Shown here: positions 26,353-64,000 of the stretch, piece by piece
How positions within the stretch are numbered: position 1 is the stretch's first letter
Layout: every line of letters begins with the position of its first letter
From: Haliotis rufescens
Lineage: Eukaryota
Direction of reading: 5' to 3'
Length of the DNA stretch: 64,000 nt
Assembly: GCF_023055435.1 (NCBI RefSeq)
Contig: NW_025963779.1
Coordinates: forward strand, 81,282,001 to 81,346,000
The notes under the pieces: model-generated
Database searches by the model: none
What the model was told of the DNA's origin: nothing
What the model saw: only the letters and a program-made list of their open reading frames with translations
Translations under genes and position numbers: made by a program

Positions 26353-26729
26353 ACTACTTTCCCAAGATTCTCTCTCCGATGACAGGCCGCTTAATAATAA
26401 TCCTTACTTTTACAGATGGCATAAAGGTTTAGGTGCTTCTCACGTATAAAGAATGCCGATATTTGCATTTTTGTGGATTTCATCATAGACAGACAGTGTT
26501 GGATACTACAGAGGACTAATGGTAAACATTTCTTTGTGGGTTACCTAATGCACAACATCCGGGCGGAAGGGACGAAACTATAAAGTATAGTCAACACTAT
26601 AAAGTTGATCAATGTCATTGAGGAATATACATATCTGAACCTCCATATTGCATACAAACAACTTTCACATGCAAATGAATGACACTTTTTCAGATTCCTA
26701 CGCTATTTCTGTCAAAATCAGGTCCTCGG

Positions 26730-26906
26730 TGCCACATGCTTGTCGTAAGAGCCAACTTATGAAGGCGACCAGATCTTTATTGTGTGTGACCTGACTGATT
26801 GTGCGTCACCGTCCCGCATGGTTTTGTGCCTCTGCCGTGGTGTAATTTGACAAAGGCTGACTGTAGCGTTAAACAATACTCTCTCATTCACCCACTCATT
26901 CGCTCA
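26730..26906 (+). mobile_element. Old degenerate family-D-related SINE in the gene 3' flank (repeated per unit)
   Basis: CATGCTTGTCGTAAGAG head motif, then GCGTTAAAC and a decayed (ACTC)n tail. Confidence 0.55.
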
Positions 26907-27062
26907 TGCCAGTAAACTAGTATAAGTGTTTCTCTTTCATGTTGATCAATTTTATCTCACTGTTCCGATACAACTCTCTTAATAGCATTTATTTTCCTTT
27001 TGTAACATAACCCCAATACTACTATGAATAAAAAACGGAAGACATTGTTTCAATGATTGTGT

Positions 27063-27068
27063 TTTATG
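27063..27068 (-). terminator. Candidate polyadenylation signal CATAAA (all copies)
   Basis: About 80 nt after the stop and followed by a GT/T-rich tract (TGTCTTCCGTTTTTTATTC). A canonical AATAAA (26993-26988) exists only in copy 1. Confidence 0.4.
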
Positions 27069-27146
27069 TGACATATTTCAAACCGGATACAATAAATAAT
27101 GTACATATTGATGATGCAGATGAATAGTGACACTGGAGCGACAACC

Positions 27147-27685
27147 TTAGTAGTAGCCATATCCAATACCTGCAACAAAAAGAAGAGGTTTTTGTTTAAG
27201 AATATTTTCCGTACAAAGTCATTTCTACGTCTTGTAATAATTTCTATATCCAATATATCGATAGGTTAGTTATGCTGCATGTGTCCAATGAAGGTGGAAA
27301 ATAAGTTTGGTGTAATTAGCTTACTTATAATCTGTCAAAGTATTAGGTATATGTGAGGGTCAATAATATTCTCGGCATGATTGTATTTGCATTTACCTTT
27401 TCCGAAACCTCCGATTCCTCCGTACAGTCCTCCTAATCCGTGGCCTCCGTATAGACCACCCATTCCGTAGCCTCCGTATAGACCACCCATTCCGTAGCCT
27501 CCGTACAGTCCTCCCAAACCGTAACCTCCGTACAGACCTCCCATTCCGAAGCCTCCGTACAGACCACCCATTCCGTAGCCTCCGTACACACCACCCTTTC
27601 CGAAGCCTCCGTGCAGACCATAGCTCACAGGCTCAGCAAAGGCAGCGACAGCCAGACAGGCAACAAGGGCGATAACTTTCATCAT
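27147..27685 (-). CDS. Secreted Gly/Tyr-rich repeat protein, copy 1 (103 aa; join 27685-27397, 27169-27147); variant L33V
   Basis: Signal peptide MMKVIALVACLAVAAFA|EP. 27-nt GGLYGGxGx repeats. Phase-1 donor AAAG|GTAAAT at 27396; acceptor TTTTGTTGCAG|GT at 27170 gives G-IGYGYY-stop. Upstream acceptor CTCCTTTTCAG| at 27695 and donor |GTGAGT at 27991 define a 5'UTR intron. Confidence 0.9.
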
Positions 27686-27991
27686 TTTGGAAGGCTGAAA
27701 AGGAGTTTTTCATTCATTATTCAAGTCTGTAAGAAAATCCGTTTCTGTACCAACTTGTGGTCGCTATTCTACACTTTTTTATTTTGTTGCTTTAAGTAGA
27801 ACTTTATCTGATTTGAAAACTACAAACACATTTGGAGGATTCAATCAATATTACAAATAGTAATCAGTAAAAGTTTGAAATGGCATTACAGCAATAACTA
27901 CTGACTAACACTCATAAAACGGCAACGTAAAATACAGCGTTAACAGGGACAGGCTGAATACCCCGTAAAACACAAAACAACTGATACTCAC

Positions 27992-28075
27992 AGAGTGTGT
28001 TGATTAGACTGGATCTAAACGTGAAGAGAGGCGACAGCAATGATAGCTAGTGCTTGAAAACAAGACGCTTATATA
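27992..28075 (-). promoter_or_regulatory. Core promoter (TATA and Inr) and non-coding exon 1 of copy 1; repeated in every unit 384-390 bp from the ATG
   Basis: Minus-strand TATATAAG at 28075-28068. Inr-like TCATTG (TCACTG in the other copies) with the A at 28041, about 32 nt downstream. A ~50-nt exon follows, ending at a GTGAGT donor at 27991. Confidence 0.75.
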
Positions 28076-30444: not shown

Positions 30445-31018
30445 CGGGCTGCAGGGACGAGAGTCAACACTGTAAAGTTGATCAATGTCATTGAGGAATA
30501 TACATATCTGAACCTCCATATTGAATACAAACAACTTTCACGTGCGAATGAATGACACTTTTTTAGAATCCTACGCTATTTCTGTCAATAACAGGTACTC
30601 GGTGCCACATGCTTGTCGTAAGAGCTGACTTATGAAGGCGACCAGATGTTTATTGTGTGTGACCTGACTGATTGTGCGTCACCGTGCCGCATGGTTTTGT
30701 GCCTCTGCCATGGTGTAATTTGACAAAGGCTGACTGTAGCGTTAAACAACACTCTCTCATTCACCCACTCATTCGCTCATGCCAGTAAACTAGTATACGC
30801 GTTTCTCTTTCATTTTGATGATTTATATCTCACTGTTCCGATACAACTCTCTTAATAACATTTTTTTCCTTTTGTAACATAGCCCCAACACTACTATGAA
30901 TAAAAAACGTAAGACATTGTTTCAATGATTGTGTTTTATGTGACATATTTCAAACCGGATACAATAAATAATGTACATATTGATGATGCAGATGAATTGT
31001 GACACTGGAGCGACAACC

Positions 31019-31557
31019 TTAGTAGAAGCCATATCCAATACCTGCAACAAAAAGAAGAGGTTTTTGTTTAAGAATATTTTCCGTACAAAGTCATTTCTAC
31101 GTCTCGTAATAATTTCTATATTCAATATATCGATAGGTTAGTTATGCTGCATGTGTCCAATGAAGGTGGAAAATAAGTTTGGTGTAATTAGCTTACTTAT
31201 AATCTGTCAAAGTATTAGGTATATGTGAGGGTCAATAATATTCTCGGCATGATTGTATTTGCATTTACCTTTTCCGAAACCTCCGATTCCTCCGTACAGT
31301 CCTCCTAATCCGTGGCCTCCGTATAGACCACCCATTCCGTAGCCTCCGTATAGACCACCCATTCCGTAGCCTCCGTACAGTCCTCCCAAACCGTAACCTC
31401 CGTACAGACCTCCCATTCCGAAGCCTCCGTACAGACCACCCATTCCGTAGCCTCCGTACAGACCACCCTTTCCGAAGCCTCCGTGCAGACCATAGCTCAC
31501 AGGCTCAGCAAAGGCAACGACAGCCAGACAGGCAACAAGGGCGATAACTTTCATCAT
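31019..31557 (-). CDS. Secreted Gly/Tyr-rich repeat protein, copy 2 (join 31557-31269, 31041-31019); variants A14V, Y102F
   Basis: Same exon structure and splice sites as copy 1; exon 3 reads GIGYGFY-stop. Confidence 0.9.
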
Positions 31558-34500
31558 TTTGGAAGGCTGAAAAGGAGTTTTTCATTCATTATTCAAGTCT
31601 GTAAGAAAATCCGTTTCTGTACCAACTTGTGGTCGCTATTCTACACTTTTTTATTTTGTTGCTTTAAGTAGAACTTTATCTGATTTGAAAACTAAAAACA
31701 CATTTGGAGGATTCAATCAATATTACAAATAGTAATCAGTAAAAGTTTGAAATAGCATTACAGCAACAACTACTGACTAACACTCATAAAACGGCAACGT
31801 AAAATACAGCGTTAACAGGGACAGGCTGAATACCCCGTAAAACACAAAACAACTGATACTCACAGAGTGTGTTGATTAGACTGGATCTAAACGTGAAGAG
31901 AGGCGACAGCAGTGATAGCTAGTGCTTGAAAACAAGACGCTTATATACACCTGTATTCGGTCCACACCCGGAACTGACTAATTACAAGTATATTATCTAA
32001 TTCAGCACCAATTTGCAACACCTTTTAAGAATCATTGCTAACAGAATTCCGTTTCCCTATGCCCCCAGGGACTATGTCCAATGCAATGTATGTGTGTAGG
32101 TGCGGGCGAATGATTAGGGAAGTAATTACATCACTGACAAATGACCCGTGATGAAATTGCGTCGATATGCGTAGATTCGTGTATAAATACCGATACAGAT
32201 GAGCATAGCCAGTCTTTTCCTATGTGCTCTGTGAAAAAAAACAATTCTATCACAATGACCCAGTAACGGGTATTGTTATAATTGTAATAATAAAAGACAG
32301 TGTGTAATTCATTTCACCTCCTAGATGGTTACTCTATAAAGTAATATCTCTTAAAGGAAAGTCTTCCCAAACATACATGGAGAGCAGGTTACCTTCCGAA
32401 CATGGTGCTTCGATCCATTTTACCACCATTCTTTTTCGACATGTGTATGTATAATATACATGGCTTTCCTAAAAGCTTATAACTTTCCCCATTTCTAGGC
32501 ATCGGTTTGGGATGGGTCGTTGTTGCTGCGCTGTGGATCCTTATATTTGATATTCATCTCACCTCTGACATTTAAATAAGGATTCGCTGACTTACATCGT
32601 ATCTGCTCCTAATTATAAATTACTTNNNNNNNNNNNNNNNNNNNNNNNNNNNNNNNNNNNNNNNNNNNNNNNNNNNNNNNNNNNNNNNNNNNNNNNNNNN
32701 NNNNNNNNNNNNNNNNNNNNNNNNNNNNNNNNNNNNNNNNNNNNNNNNNNNNNNNNNNNNNNNNNNNNNACATTCTTGAAACTCTTGAACGACAAGGTGT
32801 CACCATATACTTTTGCATAGCCCATTGTATACTTTTATTAAGAACAACATTGACAAACGAACATTCTACTCATAATTTGATTAAGGCATGCAAGCCCTAT
32901 ATATTTCCTATCAATTCATTTATTTATACTTCACTATCTGGATGATAACTGCAAATGATAATTATATTTAATGTAATGATGCTCCATGTTACGGTCATGA
33001 AGAAAAGTCAGTGCAGATTTAATGTTCACATTTCAGCAGTGACTCTTCACGCACGCCTCTAGTAACACGGTTAAAAAACCTGTTGAAACAGTTCCTGTTA
33101 AAGAACAGATCTCAATGTATTTCATATGTAGTGTGATCTACAAATGGAACCTGCATTTCATAGAAAGAAATATATCATTGATTACAATGTAACAACATCG
33201 GAGCTCTGAAAGGGTCTTCCTATATCATTAATACTGAAAAAGAGGAATGTGCAGTGGGGAGTATGGCTAATCAAGGAGTTGTATGTAAGGTGAGGTGAGG
33301 TGATATGGGGTTTAACGTCGCGTCCAAGATTATTGCACTTATATAGCGACGTGCATGCACGTGTATGTGTGTGTGTGGCTGCTTGTACTAGTCCGGACTG
33401 ATGCCGATTTATAGTGCTAGCCCACTGAGATACCATGCCGCAGTTTAACATGAATACCCCACTCAGACAGAGTATATTGACTCCGAGCCGACCAGTCCTT
33501 GTTTTAGCCCCTTAATGCCGAGCGCCAGACAGGGTAACAACAAGTATCATCTTTTAACGTCTTTTGGTATGACGCGGCTGGGGATCGAACCCCGGACCTT
33601 CCGCTCTCCGGGCGGACGCTCTACCATTAGACCACGGAGGCGGTCCAGTTGTATGTAAAGAGCATACGGCAAAGGGATAAATGTAGGATGGTAACTAAAG
33701 CTGCGGAATGGCTTGACTATGCAGCCACGGAATGGTACGACTGTATGGGGGCACATTTCAAACCTTGTGACTGTCCATTCTTGCCATTACCAAAAACCTG
33801 TCGAGTCGTTTACTACTTTCCCAAGAAAGCTTAATAATAATCCTTACTTTTACAGATGGCATATAGGTTTAGGTGCTTCTCACGTATAAAGAATGCCGAC
33901 ATTTGCATTTTTGTAAATTTCATCATGGACAGAGAGTGTTGGATACTACAGAAGACTAATGGTAAACATTTGTTTGTGTGTTACCGAAGGCACACGATCA
34001 GGTGGCTATTATATATGAATATGTGACCTTGTTATGGAACATTAATTGCCAACTTCTGTGTTGTTGTTTTCCAGACTACGTGCTTGTCGCTTTGTTTGTT
34101 TGTTTGTTTGTTTGTTTGTTTAACGCCGCACTCGACAATATTTCAGCTAAATTACGGCGGTCTGTAAATATTCTAGTCTGGACCAGACAATCCAGTGGTT
34201 GACACTATGAGCATCGATCTATGCAATCGGGATACAATAACATGCATCAACCAAGTCAGCAAGCCTGACCACCCGATCCCGTTAGTCGCCTCTTACAGCA
34301 AGCATGGGTTGCTGAAGACCTATATTCTAAACCGGATGCTCACGGATCCGGGCTGCAGGGACGAAAGTCAACACTGTAAAGTTGATCAATGTCATTGAGG
34401 AATATACATATCTGAACCTCCATATTGCATACAAACAACTTTCACGTGCGAATGAATGACACTTTTTTAGAATCCTACGCTATTTCTGTCAATAACAGGT

Positions 34501-34922
34501 GCTCGGTGCCACATGCTTGTCGTAAGAGCTGACTTATGAAGGCGACCAGATGTTTATTGTGTGTGACCTGACTGATTGTGCGTCACCGTGCCGCATGGTT
34601 TTGTGCCTCTGCCATGGTGTAATTTGACAAAGGCTGACTGTAGCGTTAAACAACACTCTCTCATTCACCCACTCATTCGCTCATGCCAGTAAACTAGTAT
34701 ACGCGTTTCTCTTTCATTTTGATGATTTATATCTCACTGTTCCGATACAACTCTCTTAATAACATTTTTTTCCTTTTGTAACCTAGCCCCAACACTACTA
34801 TGAATAAAAAACGTAAGACATTGTTTCAATGATTGTGTTTTATGTGACATATTTCAAACCGGATACAATAAATAATGTACATATTGATGATGCAGATGAA
34901 TTGTGACACTGGAGCGACAACC

Positions 34923-35461
34923 TTAGTAGTAGCCATATCCAATACCTGCAACAAAAAGAAGAGGTTTTTGTTTAAGAATATTTTCCGTACAAAGTCATTT
35001 CTACGTCTCGTAATAATTTCTATATTCAATATATCGATAGGTTAGTTATGCTGCATGTGTCCAATGAAGGTGGAAAATAAGTTTGGTGTAATTAGCTTAC
35101 TTATAATCTGTCAAAGTATTAGGTATATGTGAGGGTCAATAATATTCTCGGCATGATTGTATTTGCATTTACCTTTTCCGAAACCTCCGATTCCTCCGTA
35201 CAGTCCTCCTAGTCCGTGGCCTCCGTATAGACCACCCATTCCGTAGCCTCCGTATAGACCACCCATTCCGTAGCCTCCGTACAGTCCTCCCAAACCGTAA
35301 CCTCCGTACAGACCTCCCATTCCGAAGCCTCCGTACAGACCACCCATTCCGTAGCCTCCGTACAGACCACCCTTTCCGAAGCCTCCGTGCAGACCATAGC
35401 TCACAGGCTCAGCAAAGGCAGCGACAGCCAGACAGGCAACAAGGGCGATAACTTTCATCAT
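34923..35461 (-). CDS. Secreted Gly/Tyr-rich repeat protein, copy 3 (join 35461-35173, 34945-34923)
   Basis: Intact ORF, splice sites and TATA; consensus protein. Confidence 0.9.
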
Positions 35462-36546
35462 TTTGGAAGGCTGAAAAGGAGTTTTTCATTCATTATTCAA
35501 GTCTGTAAGAAAATCCGTTTCTGTACCAACTTGTGGTCGCTATTCTACACTTTTTTATTTTGTTGCTTTAAGTAGAACTTTATCTGATTTGAAAACTAAA
35601 AACACATTTGGAGGATTCAATCAATATTACAAATAGTAATCAGTAAAAGTTTGAAATAGCATTACAGCAACAACTACTGACTAACACTCATAAAACGGCA
35701 ACGTAAAATACAGCGTTAACAGGGACAGGCTGAATACCCCGTAAAACACAAAACAACTGATACTCACAGAGTGTGTTGATTAGACTGGATCTAAACGTGA
35801 AGAGAGGCGACAGCAGTGATAGCTAGTGCTTGAAAACAAGACGCTTATATACACCTGTATTCGGTCCACACCCGGAACTGACTAATTACAAGTATATTAT
35901 CTAATTCAGCACCAATTTGCAACACCTTTTAAGAATCATTGCTAACAGAATTCCGTTTCCCTATGCCCCCAGGGACTATGTCCAATGCAATGTATGTGTG
36001 TAGGTGCGGGCGAATGATTAGGGAAGTAATTACATCACTGACAAATGACCCGTGATGAAATTGCGTCGATATGCGTAGATTCGTGTATAAATACCGATAC
36101 AGATGAGCATAGCCAGTCTTTTCCTATGTGCTCTGTGAAAAAAAACAATTCTATCACAATGACCCAGTAACGGGTATTGTTATAATTGTAATAATAAAAG
36201 ACAGTGTGTAATTCATTTCACCTCCTAGATGGTTACTCTATAAAGTAATATCTCTTAAAGGAAAGTCTTCCCAAACATACATGGAGAGCAGGTTACCTTC
36301 CGAACATGGTGCTTCGATCCATTTTACCACCATTCTTTTTCGACATGTGTATGTATAATATACATGGCTTTCCTAAAAGCTTATAACTTTCCCCATTTCT
36401 AGGCATCGGTTTGGGATGGGTCGTTGTTGCTGCGCTGTGGATCCTTATATTTGATATTCATCTCACCTCTGACATTTAAATAAGGATTCGCTGACTTACA
36501 TCGTATCTGCTCCTAATCATAAATTACTTAATTCAAAACACAGACT

Positions 36547-36624
<78 letters not shown>

Positions 36625-38815
36625 ATATGTACGCCCTCTGCTAAAACATTCTTGAAGCTCTTGAACGACAAGGTGTCACCATATACTTTTGCATAGCCCA
36701 TGGTATACTTTTATTAAGAACAACATTGACAAACGAACATTCTACTCATAATTTGATTAAGGCATGCAAGCCCTATATATTTCCTATCAATTCATTTATT
36801 TATACTTCACTATCTGGATGATAACTGCAAATGATAATTATATTTAATGTAATGATGCTCCATGTTACGGTCATGAAGAAAAGTCAGTGCAGATTTAATG
36901 TTCACATTTCAGCAGTGACTCTTCACGCACGCCTCTAGTAACACGGTTAAAAAACCTGTTGAAACAGTTCCTGTTAAAGAACAGATCTCAATGTATTTCA
37001 TATGTAGTGTGATCTACAAATGGAACCTGCATTTCATAGAAAGAAATATATCATTGATTACAATGTAACAACATCGGAGCTCTGAAAGGGTCTTCCTATA
37101 TCATTAATACTGAAAAAGAGGAATGTGCAGTGGGGAGTATGGCTAATCAAGGAGTTGTATGTAAGGTGAGGTGAGGTGATATGGGGTTTAACGTCGCGTC
37201 CAAGATTATTGCACTTATATAGCGACGTGCATGCACGTGTATGTGTGTGTGTGGCTGCTTGTACTAGTCCGGACTGATGCCGATTTATAGTGCTAGCCCA
37301 CTGAGATACCATGCCGCAGTTTAACATGAATACCCCACTCAGACAGAGTATATTGACTCCGAGCCGACCAGTCCTTGTTTTAGCCCCTTAATGCCGAGCG
37401 CCAGACAGGGTAACAACAAGTATCATCTTTTAACGTCTTTTGGTATGACGCGGCTGGGGATCGAACCCCGGACCTTCCGCTCTCCGAGCGGACGCTCTAC
37501 CATTAGACCACGGAGGCGGTCCAGTTGTATGTAAAGAGCATACGGCAAAGGGATAAATGTAGGATGGTAACTAAAGCTGCGGAATGGCTTGACTATGCAG
37601 CCACGGAATGGTACGACTGTATGGGGGCACATTTCAAACCTTGTGACTGTCCATTCTTGCCATTACCAAAAACCTGTCGAGTCGTTTACTACTTTCCCAA
37701 GAAAGCTTAATAATAATCCTTACTTTTACAGATGGCATATAGGTTTAGGTGCTTCTCACGTATAAAGAATGCCGACATTTGCATTTTTGTAAATTTCATC
37801 ATGGACAGAGAGTGTTGGATACTACAGAAGACTAATGGTAAACATTTGTTTGTGTGTTACCGAAGGCACACGATCAGGTGGCTATTATATATGAATATGT
37901 GACCTTGTTATGGAACATTAATTGCCAACTTCTGTTCTTGTTGTTTTCCAGACTACGTGCTTGTCGCTTTGTTTGTTTGTTTCTTTGTTTGTTTGTTTGT
38001 TTGTTTGTTTGTTTAACGCCGCACTCGACAATATTTCAGCTAAATTACGGCGGTCTGTAAATATTCCAGTCTGGACCAGACAATCCAGTGATTGACACTA
38101 TGAGCATCGATCTATGCAATCGGGATACAATAACATGCATCAACCAAGTCAGCAAGCCTGACCACCCGATCCCGTTAGTCGCCTCTTACAGCAAGCATGG
38201 GTTGCTGAAGACCTATATTCTAAACCGGATGCTCACGGATCCGGGCTGCAGGGACGAGAGTCAACACTGTAAAGTTGATCAATGTCATTGAGGAATATAC
38301 ATATCTGAACCTCCATATTGCATACAAACAACTTTCACGTGCGAATGAATGACACTTTTTTAGAATCCTACGCTATTTCTGTCAATAACAGGTACTCGGT
38401 GCCACATGCTTGTCGTAAGAGCTGACTTATGAAGGCGACCAGATGTTTATTGTGTGTGACCTGACTGATTGTGCGTCACCGTGCCGCATGGTTTTGTGCC
38501 TCTGCCATGGTGTAATTTGACAAAGGCTGACTGTAGCGTTAAACAACACTCTCTCATTCACCCACTCATTCGCTCATGCCAGTAAACTAGTACACGCGTT
38601 TCTCTTTCATTTTGATGATTTATATCTCACTGTTCCGATACAACTCTCTTAATAACATTTTTTTCCTTTTGTAACATAGCCCCAACACTACTATGAATAA
38701 AAAACGTAAGACATTGTTTCAATGATTGTGTTTTATGTGACATATTTCAAACCGGATACAATAAATAATGTACATATTGATGATGCAGATGAATTGTGAC
38801 ACTGGAGCGACAACC

Positions 38816-39354
38816 TTAGTAGTAGCCATATCCAATACCTGCAACAAAAAGAAGAGGTTTTTGTTTAAGAATATTTTCCGTACAAAGTCATTTCTACGTC
38901 TCGTTATAATTTCTATATTCAATATATCGATAGGTTAGTTATGCTGCATGTGTCCAATGAAGGTGGAAAATAAGTTTGGTGTAATTAGCTTACTTATAAT
39001 CTGTCAAAGTATTAGGTATATGTGAGGGTCAATAATATTCTCGGCATGATTGTATTTGCATTTACCTTTTCCGAAACCTCCGATTCCTCCGTACAGTCCT
39101 CCTAGTCCGTGGCCTCCGTATAAACCACCCATTCCGTAGCCTCCGTATAGACCACCCATTCCGTAGCCTCCGTACAGTCCTCCCAAACCGTAACCTCCGT
39201 ACAGACCTCCCATTCCGTAGCCTCCGTACAGACCACCCATTCCGTAGCCTCCGTACAGACCACCCTTTCCGAAGCCTCCGTGCAGACCATAGCTCACAGG
39301 CTCAGCAAAGGCAGCGACAGCCAGACAGGCAACAAGGGCGATAACTTTCATCAT
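38816..39354 (-). CDS. Secreted Gly/Tyr-rich repeat protein, copy 4 (join 39354-39066, 38838-38816); variant F46Y
   Basis: Intact ORF, splice sites and TATA. Confidence 0.9.
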
Positions 39355-50554: not shown

Positions 50555-51093
50555 TTAGTAGTAGCCATATCCAATACCTGCAACAAAAAGAAGAGGTTTT
50601 TGTTTAAGAATATTTTCCGTACAAAGTCATTTCTACGTCTCGTAATAATTTCTATATTCAATATATCGATAGGTTAGTTATGCTGCATGTGTCCAATGAA
50701 GGTGGAAAATAAGTTTGGTGTAATTAGCTTACTTATAATCTGTCAAAGTATTAGGTATATGTGAGGGTCAATAATATTCTCGGCATGATTGTATTTGCAT
50801 TTACCTTTTCCGAAACCTCCGATTCCTCCGTACAGTCCTCCTAGTCCGTGGCCTCCGTATAGACCACCCATTCCGTAGCCTCCGTATAGACCACCCATTC
50901 CGTAGCCTCCGTACAGTCCTCCCAAACCGTAACCTCCGTACAGACCTCCCATTCCGAAGCCTCCGTACAGACCACCCATTCCGTAGCCTCCGTACAGACC
51001 ACCCTTTCCGAAGCCTCCGTGCAGACCATAGCTCACAGGCTCAGCAAAGGCAGCGACAGCCAGACAGGCAACAAGGGCGATAACTTTCATCAT
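50555..51093 (-). CDS. Secreted Gly/Tyr-rich repeat protein, copy 7 (join 51093-50805, 50577-50555)
   Basis: Intact ORF, splice sites and TATA; consensus protein. Confidence 0.9.
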
Positions 51094-54000
51094 TTTGGAA
51101 GGCTGAAAAGGAGTTTTTCATTCATTATTCAAGTCTGTAAGAAAATCCGTTTCTGTACCAACTTGTGGTCGCTATTCTACACTTTTTTATTTTGTTGCTT
51201 TAAGTAGAACTTTATCTGATTTGAAAACTAAAAACACATTTGGAGGATTCAATCAATATTACAAATAGTAATCAGTAAAAGTTTGAAATAGCATTACAGC
51301 AACAACTACTGACTAACACTCATAAAACGGCAACGTAAAATACAGCGTTAACAGGGACAGGCTGAATACCCCGTAAAACACAAAACAACTGATACTCACA
51401 GAGTGTGTTGATTAGACTGGATCTAAACGTGAAGAGAGGCGACAGCAGTGATAGCTAGTGCTTGAAAACAAGACGCTTATATACACCTGTATTCGGTCCA
51501 CACCCGGAACTGACTAATTACAAGTATATTATCTAATTCAGCACCAATTTGCAACACCTTTTAAGAATCATTGCTAACAGAATTCCGTTTCCCTATGCCC
51601 CCAGGGACTATGTCCAATGCAATGTATGTGTGTAGGTGCGGGCGAATGATTAGGGAAGTAATTACATCACTGACAAATGACCCGTGATGAAATTGCGTCG
51701 ATATGCGTAGATTCGTCTATAAATACCGATACAGATGAGCATAGCCAGTCTTTTCCTATGAGTTTTGTGAAAAAAAACAATTCTATCACAATGACCCAGT
51801 AACGGGTATTGTTATAATTGTAATAATAAAAGACAGCGTGTAATTCATTTCACCTCCTAGATGGTTACTCTATAAAGTAATATCTCTTAAAGGAAAGTCT
51901 TCCCAAACATACATGGAGAGCAGGTTACCTTCCGAACATGGTGCTTCGATCCATTTTACCACCATTCTTTTTCGACATGTGTATGTATAATATACATGGC
52001 TTTCCTAAAAGCTTATAACTTTCCCCATTTCTAGGCATCGGTTTGGGATGGGTCGTTGTTGCTGCGCTGTGGATCCTTATATTTGATATTCATCTCACCT
52101 CTGACATTTAAATAAGGATTCGCTGACTTACATCGTATCTGCTCCTAATTATAAATTACCTNNNNNNNNNNNNNNNNNNNNNNNNNNNNNNNNNNNNNNN
52201 NNNNNNNNNNNNNNNNNNNNNNNNNNNNNNNNNNNNNNNNNNNNNNNNNNNNNNNNNNNNNNNNNNNNNNNNNNNNNNNNNNNNNNNNNNNNNNNNNNNN
52301 NCTGCTAAAACATTCTTGAAACTCTTGAACGACAAGGTGTCACCATATACTTTTGCATAGCCCATTGTATACTTTTATTAAGAACAACATTGACAAACGA
52401 ACATTCTACTCATAATTTGATTAAGGCATGCAAGCCCTATATATTTCCTATCAATTCATTTATTTATACTTCACTATCTGGATGATAACTGCAAATGATA
52501 ATTATATTTAATGTAATGATGCTCCATGTTACGGTCATGAAGAAAAGTCAGTGCAGATTTAATGTTCACATTTCAGCAGTGACTCTTCACGCACGCCTCT
52601 AGTAACACGGTTAAAAAACCTGTTGAAACAGTTCCTGTTAAAGAACAGATCTCAATGTATTTCATATGTAGTGTGATCTACAAATGGAACCTGCATTTCA
52701 TAGAAAGAAATATATCATTGATTACAATGTAACAACATCGGAGCTCTGAAAGGGTCTTCCTATATCATTAATACTGAAAAAGAGGAATGTGCAGTGGGGA
52801 GTATGGCTAATCAAGGAGTTGTATGTAAGGTGAGGTGAGGTGATATGGGGTTTAACGTCGCGTCCAAGATTATTGCACTTATATAGCGACGTGCATGCAC
52901 GTGTATGTGTGTGTGTGGCTGCTTGTACTACTCCGGACTGATGCCGATTTATAGTGCTAGCCCACTGAGATACCATGCCGCAGTTTAACATGAATACCCC
53001 ACTCAGACAGAGTATATTGACTCCGAGCCGACCAGTCCTTGTTTTAGCCCCTTAATGCCGAGTGCCAGACAGGGTAACAACAAGTATCATCTTTTAACGT
53101 CTTTTGGTATGACGCGGCTGGGGATCGAACCCCGGACCTTCCGCTCTCCGGGCGGACGCTCTACCATTAGACCACGGAGGCGGTACAGTTGTATGTAAAG
53201 AGCATACGGCAAAGGGATAAATGTAGGATGGTAACTAAAGCTGCGGAATGGCTTGACTATGCAGCCACGGAATGGTACGACTGTATGGGGGCACATTTCA
53301 AACCTTGTGACTGTCCATTCTTGCCATTACCAAAAACCTGTCGAGTCGTTTATTACTTTCCCAAGAAAGCTTAATAATAATCCTTACTTTTACAGATGGC
53401 ATATAGGTTTAGGTGCTTCTCACGTATAAAGAATGCCGACATTTGCATTTTTGTAAATTTCATCATGGACAGAGAGTGTTGGATACTACAGAAGACTAAT
53501 GGTAAACATTTGTTTGTGTGTTACCGAAGGCACACGATCAGGTGGCTATTATATATGAATATGTGACCTTGTTATGGAACATTAATTGCCAACTTCTGTT
53601 CTTGTTGTTTTCCAGACTACGTGCTTGTCGCTTTGTTTGTTTGTTTGTTTGTTTGTTTGTTTAACGCCGCACTCGACAATATTTCAGCTAAATTACGGCG
53701 GTCTGTAAATATTCCAGTCTGGACCAGACAATCCAGTGATTGACACTATGAGCATCGATCTATGCAATCGGGATACAATAACATGCATCAACCAAGTCAG
53801 CAAGCCTGACCACCCGATCCCGTTAGTCGCCTCTTACAGCAAGCATGGGTTGCTGAAGACCTATATTCTAAACCGGATGCTCACGGATCCGGGCTGCAGG
53901 GACGAGAGTCAACACTGTAAAGTTGATCAATGTCATTGAGGAATATACATATCTGAACCACCATATTGCATACAAACAACTTTCACCTGCGAATGAATGA

Positions 54001-54463
54001 CACTTTTTTAGAATCCTACGCTATTTCTGTCAATAACAGGTACTCGGTGCCACATGCTTGTCGTAAGAGCTGACTTATGAAGGCGACCAGATGTTTATTG
54101 TGTGTGACCTGACTGATTGTGCGTCACCGTGCCGCATGGTTTTGTGCCTCTGCCATGGTGTAATTTGACAAAGGCTGACTGTAGCGTTAAACAACACTCT
54201 CTCATTCACCCACTCATTCGCTCATGCCAGTAAACTAGTATACGCGTTTCACTTTCATTTTGATGATTTATATCTCACTGTTCCGATACAACTCTCTTAA
54301 TAACATTTTTTTCCTTTTGTAACATAGCCCCAACACTACTATGAATAAAAAACGTAAGACATTGTTTCAATGATTGTGTTTTATGTGACATATTTCAAAC
54401 CGGATACAATAAATAATGTACATATTGATGATGCAGATGAATTGTGACTCTGGAGCGACAACC

Positions 54464-55002
54464 TTAGTAGTAGCCATATCCAATACCTGCAACAAAAAGA
54501 AGAGGTTTTTGTTTAAGAATATTTTCCGTACAAAGTCATTTCTACGTCTCGTAATAATTTCTATATTCAATATATCGATAGGTTAGTTATGCTGCATGTG
54601 TCCAATGAAGGTGGAAAATAAGTTTGGTGTAATTAGCTTACTTATAATCTGTCAAAGTATTAGGTATATGTGAGGGTCAATAATATTCTCGGCATGATTG
54701 TATTTGCATTTACCTTTTCCGAAACCTCCGATTCCTCCGTACAGTCCTCCTAGTCCGTGGCCTCCGTATAGACCACCCATTCCGTAGCCTCCGTATAGAC
54801 CACCCATTCCGTAGCCTCCGTACAGTCCTCCCAAACCGTAACCTCCGTACAGACCTCCCATTCCGAAGCCTCCGTACAGACCACCCATTCCGTAGCCTCC
54901 GTACAGACCACCCTTTCCGAAGCCTCCGTGCAGACCATAGCTCACAGGCTCAGCAAAGGCAGCGACAGCCAGACAGGCAACAAGGGCGATAACTTTCATC
55001 AT
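54464..55002 (-). CDS. Secreted Gly/Tyr-rich repeat protein, copy 8 (join 55002-54714, 54486-54464)
   Basis: Intact ORF, splice sites and TATA; consensus protein. Confidence 0.9.
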
Positions 55003-56087
55003 TTTGGAAGGCTGAAAAGGAGTTTTTCATTCATTATTCAAGTCTGTAAGAAAATCCGTTTCTGTACCAACTTGTGGTCGCTATTCTACACTTTTTTATT
55101 TTGTTGCTTTAAGTAGAACTTTATCTGATTTGAAAACTAAAAACACATTTGGAGGATTCAATCAATATTACAAATAGTAATCAGTAAAAGTTTGAAATAG
55201 CATTACAGCAACAACTACTGACTAACACTCATAAAACGGCAACGTAAAATACAGCGTTAACAGGGACAGGCTGAATACCCCGTAAAACACAAAACAACTG
55301 ATACTCACAGGGTGTGTTGATTAGACTGGATTTAAACGTGAAGAGAGGCGACAGCAGTGATAGCTAGTGCTTGAAAACAAGACGCTTATATACACCTGTA
55401 TTCGGTCCACACCCGGAACTGGCTAATTACAAGTATATTATCTAATTCAGCACCAATTTGCAACACCTTTTAAGAATCATTGCTAACAGAATTCCGTTTC
55501 CCTATGCCCCCAGGGACTATGTCCAATGCAATGTATGTGTGTAGGTGCGGGCGAATGATTAGGGAAGTAATTACATCACTGACAAATGACCCGTGATGAA
55601 ATTGCGTCGATATGCGTAGATTCGTGTATAAATACCGATACAGATGAGCATAGCCAGTCTTTTCCTATGTGGTCTGTGAAAAAAACCAATTCTATCACAA
55701 TGACCCAGTAACGGGTATTGTTATAATTGTAATAATAAAAGACAGTGTGTAATTCATTTCACCTCCTAGATGGTTACTCTATAAAGTAATATCTCTTAAA
55801 GGAAAGTCTTCCCAAACATACATGGAGAGCAGGTTACCTTCCGAACATGGTGCTTCGATCCATTTTACCACCATTCTTTTTCGACATGTGTATGTATAAT
55901 ATACATGGCTTTCCTAAAAGCTTATAACTTTCCCCATTTCTAGGCATCGGTTTGGGATGGGTCGTTGTTGCTGCGCTGTGGATCCTTATATTTGATATTC
56001 ATCTCACCTCTGACATTTAAATAAGGATTCGCTGACTTACATCGTGTCTGCTCCTAATCATAAATTACTTAATTCAAAACACAAACT

Positions 56088-56179
<92 letters not shown>

Positions 56180-58358
56180 GTACGCCCTCTGCTAAAACAT
56201 TCTTGAAACTCTTGAACGACAAGGTGTCACCATATACTTTTGCATAGCCCATTGTATACTTTTATTAAGAACAACATTGACAAACGAACATTCTACTCAT
56301 AATTTGATTAAGGCATGCAAGCCCTATATATTTCCTATCAATTCATTTATTTATACTTCACTATCTGGATGATAACTGCAAATGATAATTATATTTAATG
56401 TAATGATGCTCCATGTTACGGTCATGAAGAAAAGTCAGTGCAGATTTAATGTTCACATTTCAGCAGTGACTCTTCACGCACGCCTCTAGTAACACGGTTA
56501 AAAAACCTGTTGAAACAGTTCCTGTTAAAGAACAGATCTCAATGTATTTCATATGTAGTGTGATCTACAAATGGAACCTGCATTTCATAGAAAGAAATAT
56601 ATCATTGATTACAATGTAACAACATCGGAGCTCTGAAAGGGTCTTCCTATATCATTAATACTGAAAAAGAGGAATGTGCAGTGGGGAGTATGGCTAATCA
56701 AGGAGTTGTATGTAAGGTGAGGTGAGGTGATATGGGGTTTAACGTCGCGTCCAAGATTATTGCACTTATATAGCGACGTGCATGCACGTGTATGTGTGTG
56801 TGTGGCTGCTTGTACTAGTCCGGACTGATGCCGATTTATAGTGCTAGCCCACTGAGATACCATGCCGCAGTTTAACATGAATACCCCACTCAGACAGAGT
56901 ATATTGACTCCGAGCCGACCAGTCCTTGTTTTAGCCCCTTAATGCCGAGCGCCAGACAGGGTAACAACAAGTATCATCTTTTAACGTCTTTTGGTATGAC
57001 GCGGCTGGGGATCGAACCCCGGACCTTCCGCTCTCCGGGCGGACGCTCTACCATTAGACCACGGAGGCGGTCCAGTTGTATGTAAAGAGCATACGGCAAA
57101 GGGATAAATGTAGGATGGTAACTAAAGCTGCGGAATGGCTTGACTATGCAGCCACGGAATGGTACGACTGTATGGGGGCACATTTCAAACCTTGTGACTG
57201 TCCATTCTTGCCATTACCAAACACCTGTCGAGTCGTTTACTACTTTCCCAGGAAAGCTTAATAATAATCCTTACTTTTACAGATGGCATATAGGTTTAGG
57301 TGCTTCTCACGTATAAAGAATGCCGACATTTGCATTTTTGTAAATTTCATCATGGACAGAGAGTGTTGGATACTACAGAAGACTAATGGTAAACATTTGT
57401 TTGTGTGTTACCGAAGGCACACGATCAGGTGGCTATTATATATGAATATGTGACCTTGTTATGGAACATTAATTGCCAACTTCTGTTCTTGTTGTTTTCC
57501 AGACTACGTGCTTGTCGCTTTGTTTGTTTGTTTGTTTGTTTGTTTGTTTGTTTGTTTAACGCCGCACTCGACAATATTTCAGCTAAATTACGGCGGTCTG
57601 TAAATATTCCAGTCTGGACCAGACAATCCAGTGATTGACACTATGAGCATCGATCTATGCAATCGGGATACAATAACATGCATCAACCAAGTCAGCAAGC
57701 CTGACCACCCGATCCCGTTAGTCGCCTCTTACAGCAAGCATGGGTTGCTGAAGACCTATATTCTAAACCGGATGCTCACGGATCCGGGCTGCAGGGACGA
57801 GAGTCAACACTGTAAAGTTGATCAATGTCATTGAGGAATATACATATCTGAACCACCATATTGCATACAAACAACTTTCACGTGCGAATGAATGACACTT
57901 TTTTAGAATCCTACGCTATTTCTGTCAATAACAGGTACTCGGTGCCACATGCTTGTCGTAAGAGCTGACTTATGAAGGCGACCAGATGTTTATTGTGTGT
58001 GACCTGACTGATTGTGCGTCACCGTGCCGCATGGTTTTGTGCCTCTGCCATGGTGTAATTTGACAAAGGCTGACTGTAGCGTTAAACAACACTCTCTCAT
58101 TCACCCACTCATTCGCTCATGCCAGTAAACTAGTATACGCGTTTCACTTTCATTTTGATGATTTATATCTCACTGTTCCGATACAACTCTCTTAATAACA
58201 TTTTTTTCCTTTTGTAACATAGCCCCAACACTACTATGAATAAAAAACGTAAGACATTGTTTCAATGATTGTGTTTTATGTGACATATTTCAAACCGGAT
58301 ACAATAAATAATGTACATATTGATGATGCAGATGAATTGTGACTCTGGAGCGACAACC

Positions 58359-58924
58359 TTAGTAGTAGCCATATCCAATACCTGCAACAAAAAGAAGAGG
58401 TTTTTGTTTAAGAATATTTTCCGTACAAAGTCATTTCTACGTCTCGTAATAATTTCTATATTCAATATATCGATAGGTTAGTTATGCTGCATGTGTCCAA
58501 TGAAGGTGGAAAATAAGTTTGGTGTAATTAGCTTACTTATAATCTGTCAAAGTATTAGGTATATGTGAGGGTCAATAATATTCTCGGCATGATTGTATTT
58601 GCATTTACCTTTTCCGAAACCTCCGATTCCTCCGTACAGTCCTCCTAGTCCGTGGCCTCCGTATAGACCACCCATTCCGTAGCCTCCGTATAGACCACCC
58701 ATTCCGTAGCCTCCGTACAGTCCTCCCAAACCGTAGCCTCCGTACAGACCTCCCATTCCGAAGCCTCCGTACAGACCTCCCATTCCGTAGCCTCCGTACA
58801 GACCACCCATTCCGTAGCCTCCGTACAGACCACCCTTTCCGAAGCCTCCGTGCAGACCATAGCTCACAGGCTCAGCAAAGGCAGCGACAGCCAGACAGGC
58901 AACAAGGGCGATAACTTTCATCAT
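58359..58924 (-). CDS. Secreted Gly/Tyr-rich repeat protein, copy 9 (112 aa; join 58924-58609, 58381-58359); one extra GGLYGGYGM repeat
   Basis: In-frame 27-nt gain relative to the other copies; splice sites and TATA intact. Confidence 0.9.
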
Positions 58925-61900
58925 TTTGGAAGGCTGAAAAGGAGTTTTTCATTCATTATTCAAGTCTGTAAGAAAATCCGTTTCTGTACCAACTTGTGGT
59001 CGCTATTCTACACTTTTTTATTTTGTTGCTTTAAGTAGAACTTTATCTGATTTGAAAACTAAAAACACATTTGGAGGATTCAATCAATATTACAAATAGT
59101 AATCAGTAAAAGTTTGAAATAGCATTACAGCAACAACTACTGACTAACACTCATAAAACGGCAACATAAAATACAGCGTTAACAGGGACAGGCTGAATAC
59201 CCCGTAAAACACAAAACAACTGATACTCACAGAGTGTGTTGATTAGACTGGATCTAAACGTGAAGAGAGGCGACAGCAGTGATAGCTAGTGCTTGAAAAC
59301 AAGACGCTTATATACACCTGTATTCGGTCCACACCCGGAACTGAGTAATTACAAGTATATTATCTAATTCAGCACCAATTTGCAACACCTTTTAAGAATC
59401 ATTGCTAACAGAATTCCGTTTCCCTATGCCCCCAGGGACTATGTCCAATGCAATGTATGTGTGTAGGTGCGAGCGAATGATTAGGGAAGTAATTACATCA
59501 CTGACAAATGACCCGTGATGAAATTGCGTCGATATGCGTAGATTCGTGTATAAATACCGATACAGATGAGCATAGCCAGTCTTTTCCTATGAGTTTTGTG
59601 AAAAAACCCAATTCTATCACAATGACCCAGTAACGGGTATTGTTATAATTGTAATAATAAAAGACAGTGTGTAATTCATTTCACCTCCTAGATGGTTACT
59701 CTATAAAGTAATATCTCTTAAAGGAAAGTCTTCCCAAACATACATGGAGAGCAGGTTACCTTCCGAACATGGTGCTTCGATCCATTTTACCACCATTCTT
59801 TTTCGACATGTGTATGTATAATATACATGGCTTTCCTAAAAGCTTATAACTTTCCCCATTTCTAGGCATCGGTTTGGGATGGGTCGTTGTTGCTGCGCTG
59901 TGGATCCTTATATTTGATATTCATCTCACCTCTGACATTTAAATAAGGATTCGCTGACTTACATCGTGTCTGCTCCTAATCATAAATTACTTNNNNNNNN
60001 NNNNNNNNNNNNNNNNNNNNNNNNNNNNNNNNNNNNNNNNNNNNNNNNNNNNNNNNNNNNNNNNNNNNNNNNNNNNNNNNNNNNNNNNNNNNNNNNNNNN
60101 NNNNNNNNNNNNNNNNNNNNNNNNNNNNNNNNNNNNNNNNNNACATTCTTGAAACTCTTGAACGACAAGGTGTCACCATATACTTTTGCATAGCCCATTG
60201 TATACTTTTATTAAGAACAACATTGACAAACGAACATTCTACTCATAATTTGATTAAGGCATGCAAGCCCTATATATTTCCTATCAATTCATTTATTTAT
60301 ACTTCACTATCTGGATGATAACTGCAAATGATAATTATATTTAATGTAATGATGCTCCATGTTACGGTCATGAAGAAAAGTCAGTGCAGATTTAATGTTC
60401 ACATTTCAGCAGTGACTCTTCACGCACGCCTCTAGTAACACGGTTAAAAAACCTGTTGAAACAGTTCCTGTTAAAGAACAGATCTCAATGTATTTCATAT
60501 GTAGTGTGATCTACAAATGGAACCTGCATTTCATAGAAAGAAATATATCATTGATTACAATGTAACAACATCGGAGCTCTGAAAGGGTCTTCCTATATCA
60601 TTAATACTGAAAAAGAGGAATGTGCAGTGGGGAGTATGGCTAATCAAGGAGTTGTATGTAAGGTGAGGTGAGGTGATATGGGGTTTAACGTCGCGTCCAA
60701 GATTATTGCACTTATATAGCGACGTGCATGCACGTGTATGTGTGTGTGTGGCTGCTTGTACTAGTCCGGACTGATGCCGATTTATAGTGCTAGCCCACTG
60801 AGATACCATGCCGCAGTTTAACATGAATACCCCACTCAGACAGAGTATATTGACTCCGAGCCGACCAGTCCTTGTTTTAGCCCCTTAATGCCGAGCGCCA
60901 GACAGGGTAACAACAAGTATCATCTTTTAACGTCTTTTGGTATGACGCGGCTGGGGATCGAACCCCGGACCTTCCGCTCTCCGGGCGGACGCTCTACCAT
61001 TAGACCACGGAGGCGGTCCAGTTGTATGTAAAGAGCATACGGCAAAGGGATAAATGTAGGATGGTAACTAAAGCTGCGGAATGGCTTGACTATGCAGCCA
61101 CGGAATGGTACGACTGTATGGGGGCACATTTCAAACCTTGTGACTGTCCATTCTTGCCATTACCAAAAACCTGTCGAGTCGTTTACTACTTTCCCAAGAA
61201 AGCTTAATAATAATCCTTACTTTTACAGATGGCATATAGGTTTAGGTGCTTCTCACGTATAAAGAATGCCGACATTTGCATTTTTGTAAATTTCATCATG
61301 GACAGAGAGTGTTGGATACTACAGAAGACTAATGGTAAACATTTGTTTGTGTGTTACCGAAGGCACACGATCAGGTGGCTATTATATATGAATATGTGAC
61401 CTTGTTATGGAACATTAATTGCCAACTTCTGTTCTTGTTGTTTTCCAGACTACGTGCTTGTCGCTTTGTTTGTTTGTTTGTTTGTTTGTTTGTTTGTTTG
61501 TTTAACGCCGCACTCGACAATATTTCAGCTAAATTACGGCGGTCTGTAAATATTCCAGTCTGGACCAGACAATCCAGTGATTGACACTAAGGGCATCGAT
61601 CTATGCAATCGGGATACAATAACATGCATCAACCAAGTCAGCAAGCCTGACCACCCGATCCCGTTAGTCGCCTCTTACAGCAAGCATGGGTTGCTGAAGA
61701 CCTATATTCTAAACCGGATGCTCACGGATCCGGGCTGCAGGGACGAGAGTCAACACTGTAAAGTTGATCAATGTCATTGAGGAATATACATATCTGAACC
61801 ACCATATTGCATACAAACAACTTTCACGTGCGAATGAATGACACTTTTTTAGAATCCTACGCTATTTCTGTCAATAACAGGTACTCGGTGCCACATGCTT

Positions 61901-62304
61901 GTCGTAAGAGCTGACTTATGAAGGCGACCAGATGTTTATTGTGTGTGACCTGACTGATTGTGCGTCACCGTGCCGCATGGTTTTGTGCCTCTGCCATGGT
62001 GTAATTTGACAAAGGCTGACTGTAGCGTTAAACAACACTCTCTCATTCACCCACTCATTCGCTCATGCCAGTAAACTAGTATACGCGTTTCACTTTCATT
62101 TTGATGATTTATATCTCACTGTTCCGATACAACTCTCTTAATAACATTTTTTTCCTTTTGTAACATAGCCCCAACACTACTATGAATAAAAAACGTAAGA
62201 CATTGTTTCAATGATTGTGTTTTATGTGACATATTTCAAACCGGATACAATAAATAATGTACATATTGATGATGCAGATGAATTGTGACTCTGGAGCGAC
62301 AACC

Positions 62305-62843
62305 TTAGTAGTAGCCATATCCAATACCTGCAACAAAAAGAAGAGGTTTTTGTTTAAGAATATTTTCCGTACAAAGTCATTTCTACGTCTCGTAATAATT
62401 TCTATATTCAATATATCGATAGGTTAGTTATGCTGCATGTGTCCAATGAAGGTGGAAAATAAGTTTGGTGTAATTAGCTTACTTATAATCTGTCAAAGTA
62501 TTAGGTATATGTGAGGGTCAATAATATTCTCGGCATGATTGTATTTGCATTTACCTTTTCCGAAACCTCCGATTCCTCCGTACAGTCCTCCTAGTCCGTG
62601 GCCTCCGTATAGACCACCCATTCCGTAGCCTCCGTATAGACCACCCATTCCGTAGCCTCCGTACAGTCCTCCCAAACCGTAACCTCCGTACAGACCTCCC
62701 ATTCCGAAGCCTCCGTACAGACCACCCATTCCGTAGCCTCCGTACAGACCACCCTTTCCGAAGCCTCCGTGCAGACCATAGCTCACAGGCTCAGCAAAGG
62801 CAGCGACAGCCAGACAGGCAACAAGGGCGATAACTTTCATCAT
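62305..62843 (-). CDS. Secreted Gly/Tyr-rich repeat protein, copy 10 (join 62843-62555, 62327-62305)
   Basis: Intact ORF, splice sites and TATA; consensus protein. Confidence 0.9.
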
Positions 62844-63928
62844 TTTGGAAGGCTGAAAAGGAGTTTTTCATTCATTATTCAAGTCTGTAAGAAAATCCGT
62901 TTCTGTACCAACTTGTGGTCGCTATTCTACACTTTTTTATTTTGTTGCTTTAAGTAGAACTTTATCTGATTTGAAAACTAAAAACACATTTGGAGGATTC
63001 AATCAATATTACAAATAGTAATCAGTAAAAGTTTGAAATAGCATTACAGCAACAACTACTGACTAACACTCATAAAACGGCAACGTAAAATACAGCGTTA
63101 ACAGGGACAGGCTGAATACCCCGTAAAACACAAAACAACTGATACTCACAGAGTGTGTTGATTAGACTGGATCTAAACGTGAAGAGAGGCGACAGCAGTG
63201 ATAGCTAGTGCTTGAAAACAAGACGCTTATATACACCTGTATTCGGTCCACACCCGGAACTGAGTAATTACAAGTATATTATCTAATTCAGCACCAATTT
63301 GCAACACCTTTTAAGAATCATTGCTAACAGAATTCCGTTTCCCTATGCCCCCAGGGACTATGTCCAATGCAATGTATGTGTGTAGGTGCGGGCGAATGAT
63401 TAGGGAAGTAATTACATCACTGACAAATGACCCGTGATGAAATTGCGTCGATATGCGTAGATTCGTGTATAAATACCGATACAGATGAGCATAGCCAGTC
63501 TTTTCCTATGAGTTTTGTGAAAAAACCCAATTCTATCACAATGACCCAGTAACGGGTATTGTTATAATTGTAATAATAAAAGACAGTGTGTAATTCATTT
63601 CACCTCCTAGATGGTTACTCTATAAAGTAATATCTCTTAAAGGAAAGTCTTCCCAAACATACATGGAGAGCAGGTTACCTTCCGAACATGGTGCTTCGAT
63701 CCATTTTACCACCATTCTTTTTCGACATGTGTATGTATAATATACATGGCTTTCCTAAAAGCTTATAACTTTCCCCATTTCTAGGCATCGGTTTGGGATG
63801 GGTCGTTGTTGCTGCGCTGTGGATCCTTATATTTGATATTCATCTCACCTCTGACATTTAAATAAGGATTCGCTGACTTACATCGTATCTGCTCCTAATT
63901 ATAAATTACCTAATTCAAAACACAGACT

Positions 63929-64000
<72 letters not shown>

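Follow-up and report, generated by a model that had tools for sequence, protein, structure and literature searches.

A 21-copy tandem array of genes for a secreted glycine- and tyrosine-rich repeat protein in Haliotis rufescens

Secreted proteins rich in glycine (Gly) and tyrosine (Tyr) are produced at the mantle edge of molluscs, and most of them are known as single expressed sequence tags (ESTs) and are hard to see by trypsin-based shell proteomics. In abalone, Jackson, Woerheide and Degnan described Has-tsfgr1 from Haliotis asinina in 2007, an open reading frame of 114 amino acids (aa) with a 17-residue signal peptide, approximately 15 non-repeat residues, short repeats of Gly, leucine (Leu) and Tyr, more than 52% Gly, and a C-terminus of 5 residues ending in Tyr (PMC2034539). 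Has-tsfgr1 is expressed only at the shell-field edge of the trochophore, at the veliger mantle edge and in the anterior outer mantle fold of 2-mm juveniles, and its expression is lost in animals larger than 20 mm (PMC2034539). In Lymnaea and Cepaea, the mantle belt or periostracal groove expresses, alongside a peroxidase, secreted proteins with more than 50% Gly and 13-19% Tyr, the tyrosines being flanked by Gly; these proteins have been proposed as substrates that the peroxidase cross-links (PMC6007483, PMC7894901). In the pearl oyster Pinctada, shematrin and other shell-matrix genes are tandemly duplicated, for which a dosage rationale has been discussed (Takeuchi et al. 2016, PMC4759782). 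Here, we describe a tandem array of genes for a small protein of this kind in Haliotis rufescens, of which ten copies lie in a 64-kb stretch, C1:81282001-81346000 of a 1.33-Gb assembly. This stretch, at its full length, is referred to below as the window. A search of the assembly for COX1 gave no match, but an intronless HSP70 open reading frame in it is identical to XP_046367549.2 of H. rufescens, which places the DNA in red abalone or a very close relative.

The tandem array and its transcripts

A 27-bp coding repeat, with a consensus that reads YGMGGLYGG on the minus strand, was found ten times in the window by Tandem Repeats Finder (TRF), 3.87-3.95 kb apart. A script placed the corresponding ATG codons, all on the minus strand only, at plus-strand coordinates 27685, 31557, 35461, 39354, 43246, 47198, 51093, 55002, 58924, and 62843. 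The borders of the array (26589 and 106053) were determined by blastn, using one unit against the window and the 60 kb downstream of it, which gave 21 copies over 79.5 kb (C1:81308589-81388053, window-equivalent 26589-106053). An earlier inspection of the same DNA, here called the sequence-only reading, had claimed at least 10 intact genes, in ten near-identical units of about 3.9 kb with a TATA box, splice sites and an open frame and without a pseudogenised copy. This was borne out for 10 of 10 units in the window, and it extends to the full array, since the TATA box, GT..AG at both introns, and the open frame are kept in 21 of 21 copies.

The copies are very uniform. Units 2-21 show 99.0-99.8% identity over their full length, spacer included, and an identical 103-aa protein is encoded by 17 of the 21 copies. 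The predicted length of 103 aa applies to nine of the ten window copies and fails for copy 9, which encodes 112 aa. Variable columns make up 4.2% of the spacer and 1.7% of the exon 2 coding sequence; thus, the spacer is as uniform as the gene, and the whole unit, beyond its coding part, is kept homogeneous. Just outside the left border of the array lie two diverged pieces of spacer, at window positions 25686-26019 (81%) and 26389-26554 (93%), matching unit positions 1213-1546 and 2272-2437, respectively, and their sequence suggests an older unit that is no longer homogenised.

Read along the minus strand, each unit has a TATA box followed by a short non-coding exon. A 297-nt intron separates this exon from the one with the repeats, and a 227-nt phase-1 intron lies between the latter and a micro-exon. 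Coding exon 2 begins 9 nt before ATGATGAAAGTT and encodes the signal peptide and the Gly/Tyr repeats. In the reference copy, copy 3, it consists of 9 nt of 5' untranslated region (5'UTR), the ATG at 35461, the signal peptide of 17 aa, EPVSYGLHGGFGK, seven repeats and FGK, and ends in phase 1. By inspection, the signal peptide MMKVIALVACLAVAAFA has a hydrophobic core and A-x-A before the cut, which is followed by the 13-aa EPVSYGLHGGFGK. The mature protein has a computed mass of 8.2 kDa and isoelectric point (pI) of 8.2, and contains seven 9-aa GGLYGGxGx repeats and a C-terminus, GIGYGYY, that comes from the separate micro-exon. Its 86 aa comprise 44 Gly (51.2%), 15 Tyr (17.4%), 11.6% Leu, 1 Glu, 2 Lys, and 2 His, with no Cys, in exact agreement with the composition and 9-aa repeat arrangement given in the sequence-only reading. 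Ala and Thr are absent from the mature protein, as are KR, RR, KK, and RK, and both Lys residues stand singly.

Transcription was examined with contigs from four public runs (X1, X2, X6, and X8; presumed to be RNA), which were placed on one unit. Intron 1 is removed, as seen from a joint 35470->35768 that skips 297 nt with GT..AG on the minus strand. The removal of intron 2 is seen from a joint 34942->35170, which, when shifted by +3, becomes 34945->35173 and likewise has GT..AG on the minus strand; moreover, the depth over intron 2 is at most ~1% of that over exon 3. A contig of X2 stops at 34824 and continues into T25 on the plus strand, which is a poly(A) tail. On the 5' side, one complementary DNA (cDNA) end with adapter was found at 35807, and the depth in X1 and X2 does not extend beyond 35811 in the upstream direction, so that transcription starts approximately 35-45 nt below the TATA box. 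The predicted gene model with two introns was therefore correct. Spliced transcripts, the lack of which would have refuted the earlier reading, are present: contigs of the public runs contain both joints, and they place the poly(A) site at 34824 and the 5' limit a short way below the TATA box. Over the exons, depth amounted to 1.5e4-7e5 in X1 and X2 versus ~10-20 in X6 and X8, while several runs with the same species label contained almost none of the sequence words of the gene. Contig depth sums paralogues and was not used quantitatively. The product of the unit is a spliced, polyadenylated mRNA, the abundance of which is strongly sample-dependent.

Six units of the window contain runs of N. 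The runs precede the ATG by 1069-1235 nt and the transcription start by ~0.7-0.85 kb, and exactly where the gapped units read N, the ungapped ones have a (CT)n microsatellite of 40-78 bp. The flanks of the gaps are collinear with ungapped units on both sides, and units with a gap (3892-3952 bp) match those without one in length. This location, together with the collinear flanks, means that the gaps are intergenic and crossed by no reading frame, and we could rule out that they interrupt genes, as all of them fall at the spacer microsatellite.

Besides the gene, a unit holds only dispersed repeats, among them a short interspersed nuclear element (SINE) with a tRNA-like head that is present in every unit (for example at 37446-37517). 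The ~350 bp around this head have other copies in the window at 79-96% identity, and show very high depth in all four public runs. Dispersed repeats, including the SINE, were noted at window positions 33400-33667, 34070-34337, and 37152-37400, and also at 8153-8501, 18338-18689, and 19950-20230. The coordinates of the features are collected in Table 1.

Table 1. Features of the array, in window coordinates
Feature	Position	Strand	Remarks
TATA box TATATAAG, reference copy 3	35844..35851	-	At ATG+390 in 21/21 copies
Exon 1, non-coding 5'UTR, copy 3	35768..35811, 5' end approximate	-	Joint 35470->35768 in X1, X2, X8
Exon 2, copy 3	35173..35470	-	Translation, 27-bp tandem repeat, joints both sides
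Intron 2, copy 3, 227 nt, phase 1	34946..35172	-	Joint seen in X1, X2, X6
Exon 3, copy 3	34824..34945	-	23 coding nt (...GIGYGYY + stop, to 34923), then 3'UTR, poly(A) site
Tandem array, window part	26589..64000	-	10 of 21 head-to-tail ~3.9-kb units; array extends to window-equivalent 106053
Gene copy 1	27048..28035	-	103 aa, variant L33V
Gene copy 2	30920..31907	-	103 aa, variants A14V and Y102F
Gene copy 4	38717..39704	-	103 aa, variant F46Y
Gene copy 5	42609..43596	-	103 aa, majority protein
Gene copy 6	46561..47548	-	103 aa, majority protein
Gene copy 7	50456..51443	-	103 aa, majority protein
Gene copy 8	54365..55352	-	103 aa, majority protein
Gene copy 9	58260..59274	-	112 aa, extra 9-aa repeat; TRF 8.6 versus 7.6 copies of 27-bp unit
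Gene copy 10	62206..63193	-	103 aa, majority protein
Intergenic (CT)n/(GA)n microsatellite, copy 3 spacer	36549..36619	.	1089-1158 from ATG
N runs at microsatellite place in six other units	32626-32769, 40423-40556, 44319-44481, 48267-48408, 52162-52301, 59993-60142	.	1069-1235 from ATG
tRNA-like head of dispersed SINE in spacer	33570..33641	-	Rfam tRNA 30.1 bits versus gathering score 29

Related genes in H. rufescens and H. cracherodii

For homology searches, exon 2 was used as a query, along with a 200-aa protein model from H. cracherodii that is described below. A Pfam scan of exon 2 returned no family, and the ESM Atlas gave weak look-alikes only, namely, arthropod cuticle proteins at 0.77, which we took as an analogy. 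A library of 5.8 billion proteins yielded no H. rufescens match in the range of 53-350 aa, which longer, chained models would escape. An exhaustive search among representative proteins with exon 2 yielded one real relative, XP_071095146.1 of H. cracherodii (P0010 in our list), which matches with 91% identity in three stretches. Apart from this protein, the searches with exon 2 and with the 200-aa model gave weak low-complexity matches, and the other 150 matches listed for exon 2 in the exhaustive search were long Gly-rich proteins of which only the repeats matched, making them uninformative for homology. A named shematrin was not among the exon 2 matches, few of which are named, and one of the searches spanned only proteins of 53-168 aa.

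XP_071095146.1 (346 aa) is annotated in RefSeq as 'shematrin-like protein 2' and clusters with XP_071095156.1 (P0160, 'spidroin-1-like', 979 aa) and XP_071095135.1 (P0161, 'shematrin-like protein 2', 200 aa). Ten complete H. cracherodii copies could be taken from these models, nine of them identical and the tenth with one change. Compared with the H. rufescens majority copy, 8 of 96 exon 2 residues are different, and at these sites, nearly all copies of a species carry the residue of that species, with H. rufescens copy 4 as the exception at one site. The copies are homogeneous in a species-specific manner. Judging from these sequences, the two arrays may either have been homogenised by unequal crossing-over or gene conversion, or have been amplified independently in each species after the split.

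The window array is part of a larger family. A 20-nt core of the sequence coding for the signal peptide has 121 exact matches in the genome versus 0 for a reversed control. Among the matches listed, 22 are on C1, comprising the array and one diverged intact copy. Also among the matches listed are long arrays with a 4.0-kb period on C24, including 28 copies at C24:836598-943622 and further arrays at 566-607 kb and 1043-1097 kb, and at least 29 copies with a 4.46-kb period at C79:23.344-23.49 Mb. A separate protein search revealed further family members on C190. These genes form three subfamilies: A, the window array; B, the arrays on C24 and C79 and one C190 locus; and C, on C190 (6.88-6.91 Mb). 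All three share the three-exon structure and a signal peptide of the form MMK...LVACLAV... In each, the splice acceptor is 9 nt ahead of the ATG, a C-terminal GK/GKGI motif precedes a donor in phase 1, and the last exon is a micro-exon for G[IM]GY(GY)Y, which reads GIGYY or GMGYGYY in the paralogues. The C24 and C79 proteins start with MMKIVAALVACLAVTAFAEPTGLYGG..., have 7-aa GGLYGGM repeats, and end in GIGYY. Promoters could not be aligned between subfamilies, and those of the others share no 11-mers with subfamily A, so that a common cis-element could not be proposed.

Several related loci were noted along the way. The third subfamily (MMKIIVVLVACLAVAAYAKP..., end GMGYGYY) at C190:6877000-6907500 has copies on both strands of one 3.5-kb stretch. 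The solitary intact copy of the window gene is located at C1:80283919-80284906, 1.0 Mb from the array, and has the same three exons, with 86% DNA identity and 96% exon 2 protein identity to the window gene; it has the look of a copy that escaped from array homogenisation. At C1:83003551-83015196, there are longer open frames with GGYGMGGLY repeats, one of which is 185 aa long with several Cys substitutions and no recognisable signal peptide, while the others have stops within the match. These may be decayed or rearranged relatives.

A candidate role in the shell and the alternatives

The sequence-only reading had proposed a dosage-amplified locus for either a bulk secreted biomaterial or a defence peptide. 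The first part fits the depth in the public runs, the likeness to Has-tsfgr1, and the gastropod mantle-edge proteins, whereas its list of materials was too broad, and the defence alternative is weak. In our view, the array probably encodes a structural monomer of the organic layer of the larval or juvenile shell, or of the periostracum, which can be cross-linked through its tyrosines, with the array being amplified for output and kept uniform by concerted evolution. In such a scheme, the signal peptide would be cut after AFA, and the 86-aa monomer, almost without charge and probably disordered, would be secreted by shell-field or mantle-edge cells at the margin of the growing shell. There, a tyrosinase or peroxidase could oxidise the Gly-flanked tyrosines to give 3,4-dihydroxyphenylalanine (DOPA) or di-tyrosine cross-links, and the cross-linked monomers would form an insoluble organic sheet, either periostracum or an organic framework, on which mineral is deposited. 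The 21 TATA promoters, firing together, would multiply the output of the few cells that have to build a shell quickly, and the copies would be kept from diverging through unequal crossing-over or gene conversion.

More tentatively, the family of at least 121 genes, with half a dozen internally uniform arrays, could be a dosage system in the style of histone or chorion genes, through which a handful of shell-field or mantle-edge cells lay down the first organic layer of the shell within hours. Should this possibility hold, array copy number would be inherited, would probably be polymorphic, and would help to determine how the larval and juvenile shell of abalone grows, and the amplification would be the largest so far seen for a mollusc shell-forming gene.

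Several points weigh against a shell monomer. The link to Has-tsfgr1 is drawn from described features, and low-complexity proteins can converge; moreover, the true orthologue of Has-tsfgr1 may be a subfamily with 7-aa repeats (B or C) rather than the window array. The public runs are coded and only presumed to be RNA, and contig depth is a poor measure of expression. The copy number is drawn from a single assembly in which six spacers contain gaps. Finally, the available part of a report on the adult H. laevigata shell proteome lists no Gly/Tyr-rich major protein (PMC6003135). This absence counts as weak evidence, since there are only two tryptic sites in the protein and tsfgr1 is off in adults.

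The same chemistry could serve in a different hard or adhesive structure, for instance the radula, the larval operculum, a settlement or pedal adhesive, or the jaw cuticle. Composition alone cannot separate tanned materials from one another, the GGLYGG motif is common to the Gly-rich modules of squid suckerins, and the weak ESM Atlas look-alikes are cuticle proteins. Expression that is switched on or off between public runs would agree with another tissue as well, and three subfamilies with unrelated promoters could serve different tissues. Nevertheless, the sole Haliotis gene of such architecture with in situ data marks shell-forming cells only (PMC2034539), and the Lymnaea and Cepaea proteins of like composition are products of mantle-edge genes, which makes a tissue other than the shell-forming ones rather unlikely.

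We consider it much less likely that the gene encodes a Gly/Tyr-rich antimicrobial or signalling peptide, like nematode NLP-29/31, spider ctenidins, or acanthoscurrins, that was amplified for defence. The protein is indeed small and secreted, its nearest small bivalve match, from Mya arenaria, is called 'neuropeptide-like protein 31', and Gly-rich antimicrobial peptides exist in crustaceans (PMC7017220). However, this name was assigned automatically and reflects low-complexity similarity, and the mature protein is nearly neutral (pI 8.2 with 2 Lys, 2 His, and 1 Glu). It also lacks a dibasic processing site, unlike precursors of the NLP-29/31 type, and a C-terminal Gly-Lys/Arg amidation signal, and the uniformity of the copies is the opposite of the diversification that is usual in families of immune effectors.

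The RefSeq models of H. cracherodii raise another alternative, namely that copies are spliced together into a giant, spidroin-like polyprotein. These models chain seven copies (XP_071095156.1), three copies (XP_071095146.1), and two copies (XP_071095135.1) through a linker exon derived from the spacer, and a low-depth contig of X1, with a depth of 15, covers part of the spacer. In H. rufescens, however, all 19 copies with the anchor have a TAG in the linker frame after 23 codons. Transcripts start below the TATA box and end in poly(A) at 34824, and the depth over the spacer is lower than that over the exons by four orders of magnitude. In addition, the terminal micro-exon is conserved in all three subfamilies. 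With a linker stop in every anchor-carrying copy, and transcripts that span a single unit, we rejected the giant silk as very improbable. For the same two reasons, the chained H. cracherodii models are probably annotation artefacts or rare read-through rather than evidence of a polyprotein, and such chaining is probably a systematic annotation error for arrays of this kind.

Lastly, an assembly artefact that expanded one or two real copies, or a dead satellite with a chance open reading frame, might be suspected from near-identical units, six gapped spacers, and a count that comes from one assembly, but this is hardly credible. Private substitutions, unequal microsatellite lengths, the 27-bp insertion of copy 9, and one unit of 3582 bp set the copies apart, which argues against artificial duplication. 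Moreover, an independent assembly of H. cracherodii has at least 12 copies, and the gene is transcribed and spliced.

Comparison with described systems

This kind of gene is already known, through Has-tsfgr1 in 2007, the automatic 'shematrin-like' names of the orthologues, and the tandem shell-matrix genes of pearl oysters. The statement in the sequence-only reading that it is not a named gene could therefore not be upheld, as a gene of the same architecture was published in 2007, and the H. cracherodii orthologues carry RefSeq names, albeit automatic ones. No description of the window array itself was found in the literature searched. Within that literature, three aspects appear to be undescribed. 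The first is how far and how uniformly the gene has been amplified, as 21 copies share 99% identity or more and the family numbers at least 121 genes. The others are the three-exon structure, conserved with its C-terminal micro-exon included, and the evidence of concerted evolution from a comparison of two species of abalone. For at least one secreted Gly/Tyr-rich protein, abalone have 21 uniform genes that belong to a family of more than 120, and gene dosage and concerted evolution thereby become testable parts of how a larval or juvenile shell is built. The locus also offers a marker for aquaculture and ocean-acidification studies, and it indicates that the way in which RefSeq currently models the H. 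cracherodii orthologues ('spidroin-1-like', 979 aa) is probably a chaining artefact.

The H. cracherodii models represent an orthologous tandem array, with units that are 91% identical to exon 2 and have the same signal peptide and a GIGY(GY)Y end. They differ from the window genes in that 2-7 neighbouring genes are joined through the spacer, whereas the linker frame of the window is closed by a stop. Has-tsfgr1 comes from the same genus and shares with the window protein a 17-residue signal peptide, a short non-repeat N-terminus, repeats of Gly, Leu, and Tyr, more than 50% Gly, a length of ~100-115 aa, and a short C-terminal motif that ends in Tyr. It is distinguished by 7-aa GGYGLGL repeats and a GYKGY end, in contrast to the 9-aa GGLYGGYGM repeats and GIGYGYY end of the window protein, and it is known as a single EST (DW986319) without genomic organisation or copy number.

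Lymnaea Lstag-sfc-6/7/8, Cepaea Cnem-Gly-rich-2/3, and Mytilus periostracin resemble the window protein in being secreted and mildly basic, with more than 50% Gly, 10-19% Tyr, and Gly-flanked tyrosines, and they are proposed or shown substrates of oxidative cross-linking in the periostracum. On the other side, no sequence relationship with these proteins is established, and array organisation is not reported for them. PMC3821031, citing Waite et al. 1979, gives periostracin as a basic protein of 20 kDa with 55% Gly, 10% Tyr, and 2.2% DOPA. It has never been sequenced, and although it is larger (20 kDa versus 8.2 kDa here), its Gly and Tyr content and mild basicity (pI 8.2 here) are similar. 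Squid suckerins have the GGLYGG motif in their Gly-rich modules as well, but they are much larger and alternate these with beta-sheet modules rich in Ala, His, and Thr, which are absent here (no Ala or Thr, and 2 His).

Shematrins reportedly end in a basic, Tyr-terminal motif of the RKKKY type, a description attributed to Yano et al. in 2006. A basic C-terminal motif of this type is absent from the window protein, in which GIGYGYY ends in Tyr without a basic residue. The Pinctada shematrins are larger than the window protein, and homology cannot be assessed under such a biased composition. They are likewise secreted, repetitive, Gly/Tyr-rich proteins of the mantle edge and the shell framework that end in Tyr and are encoded by tandem genes, with five genes lying on two scaffolds, against an array of 21 near-identical copies and a family of at least 121 genes in H. 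rufescens.

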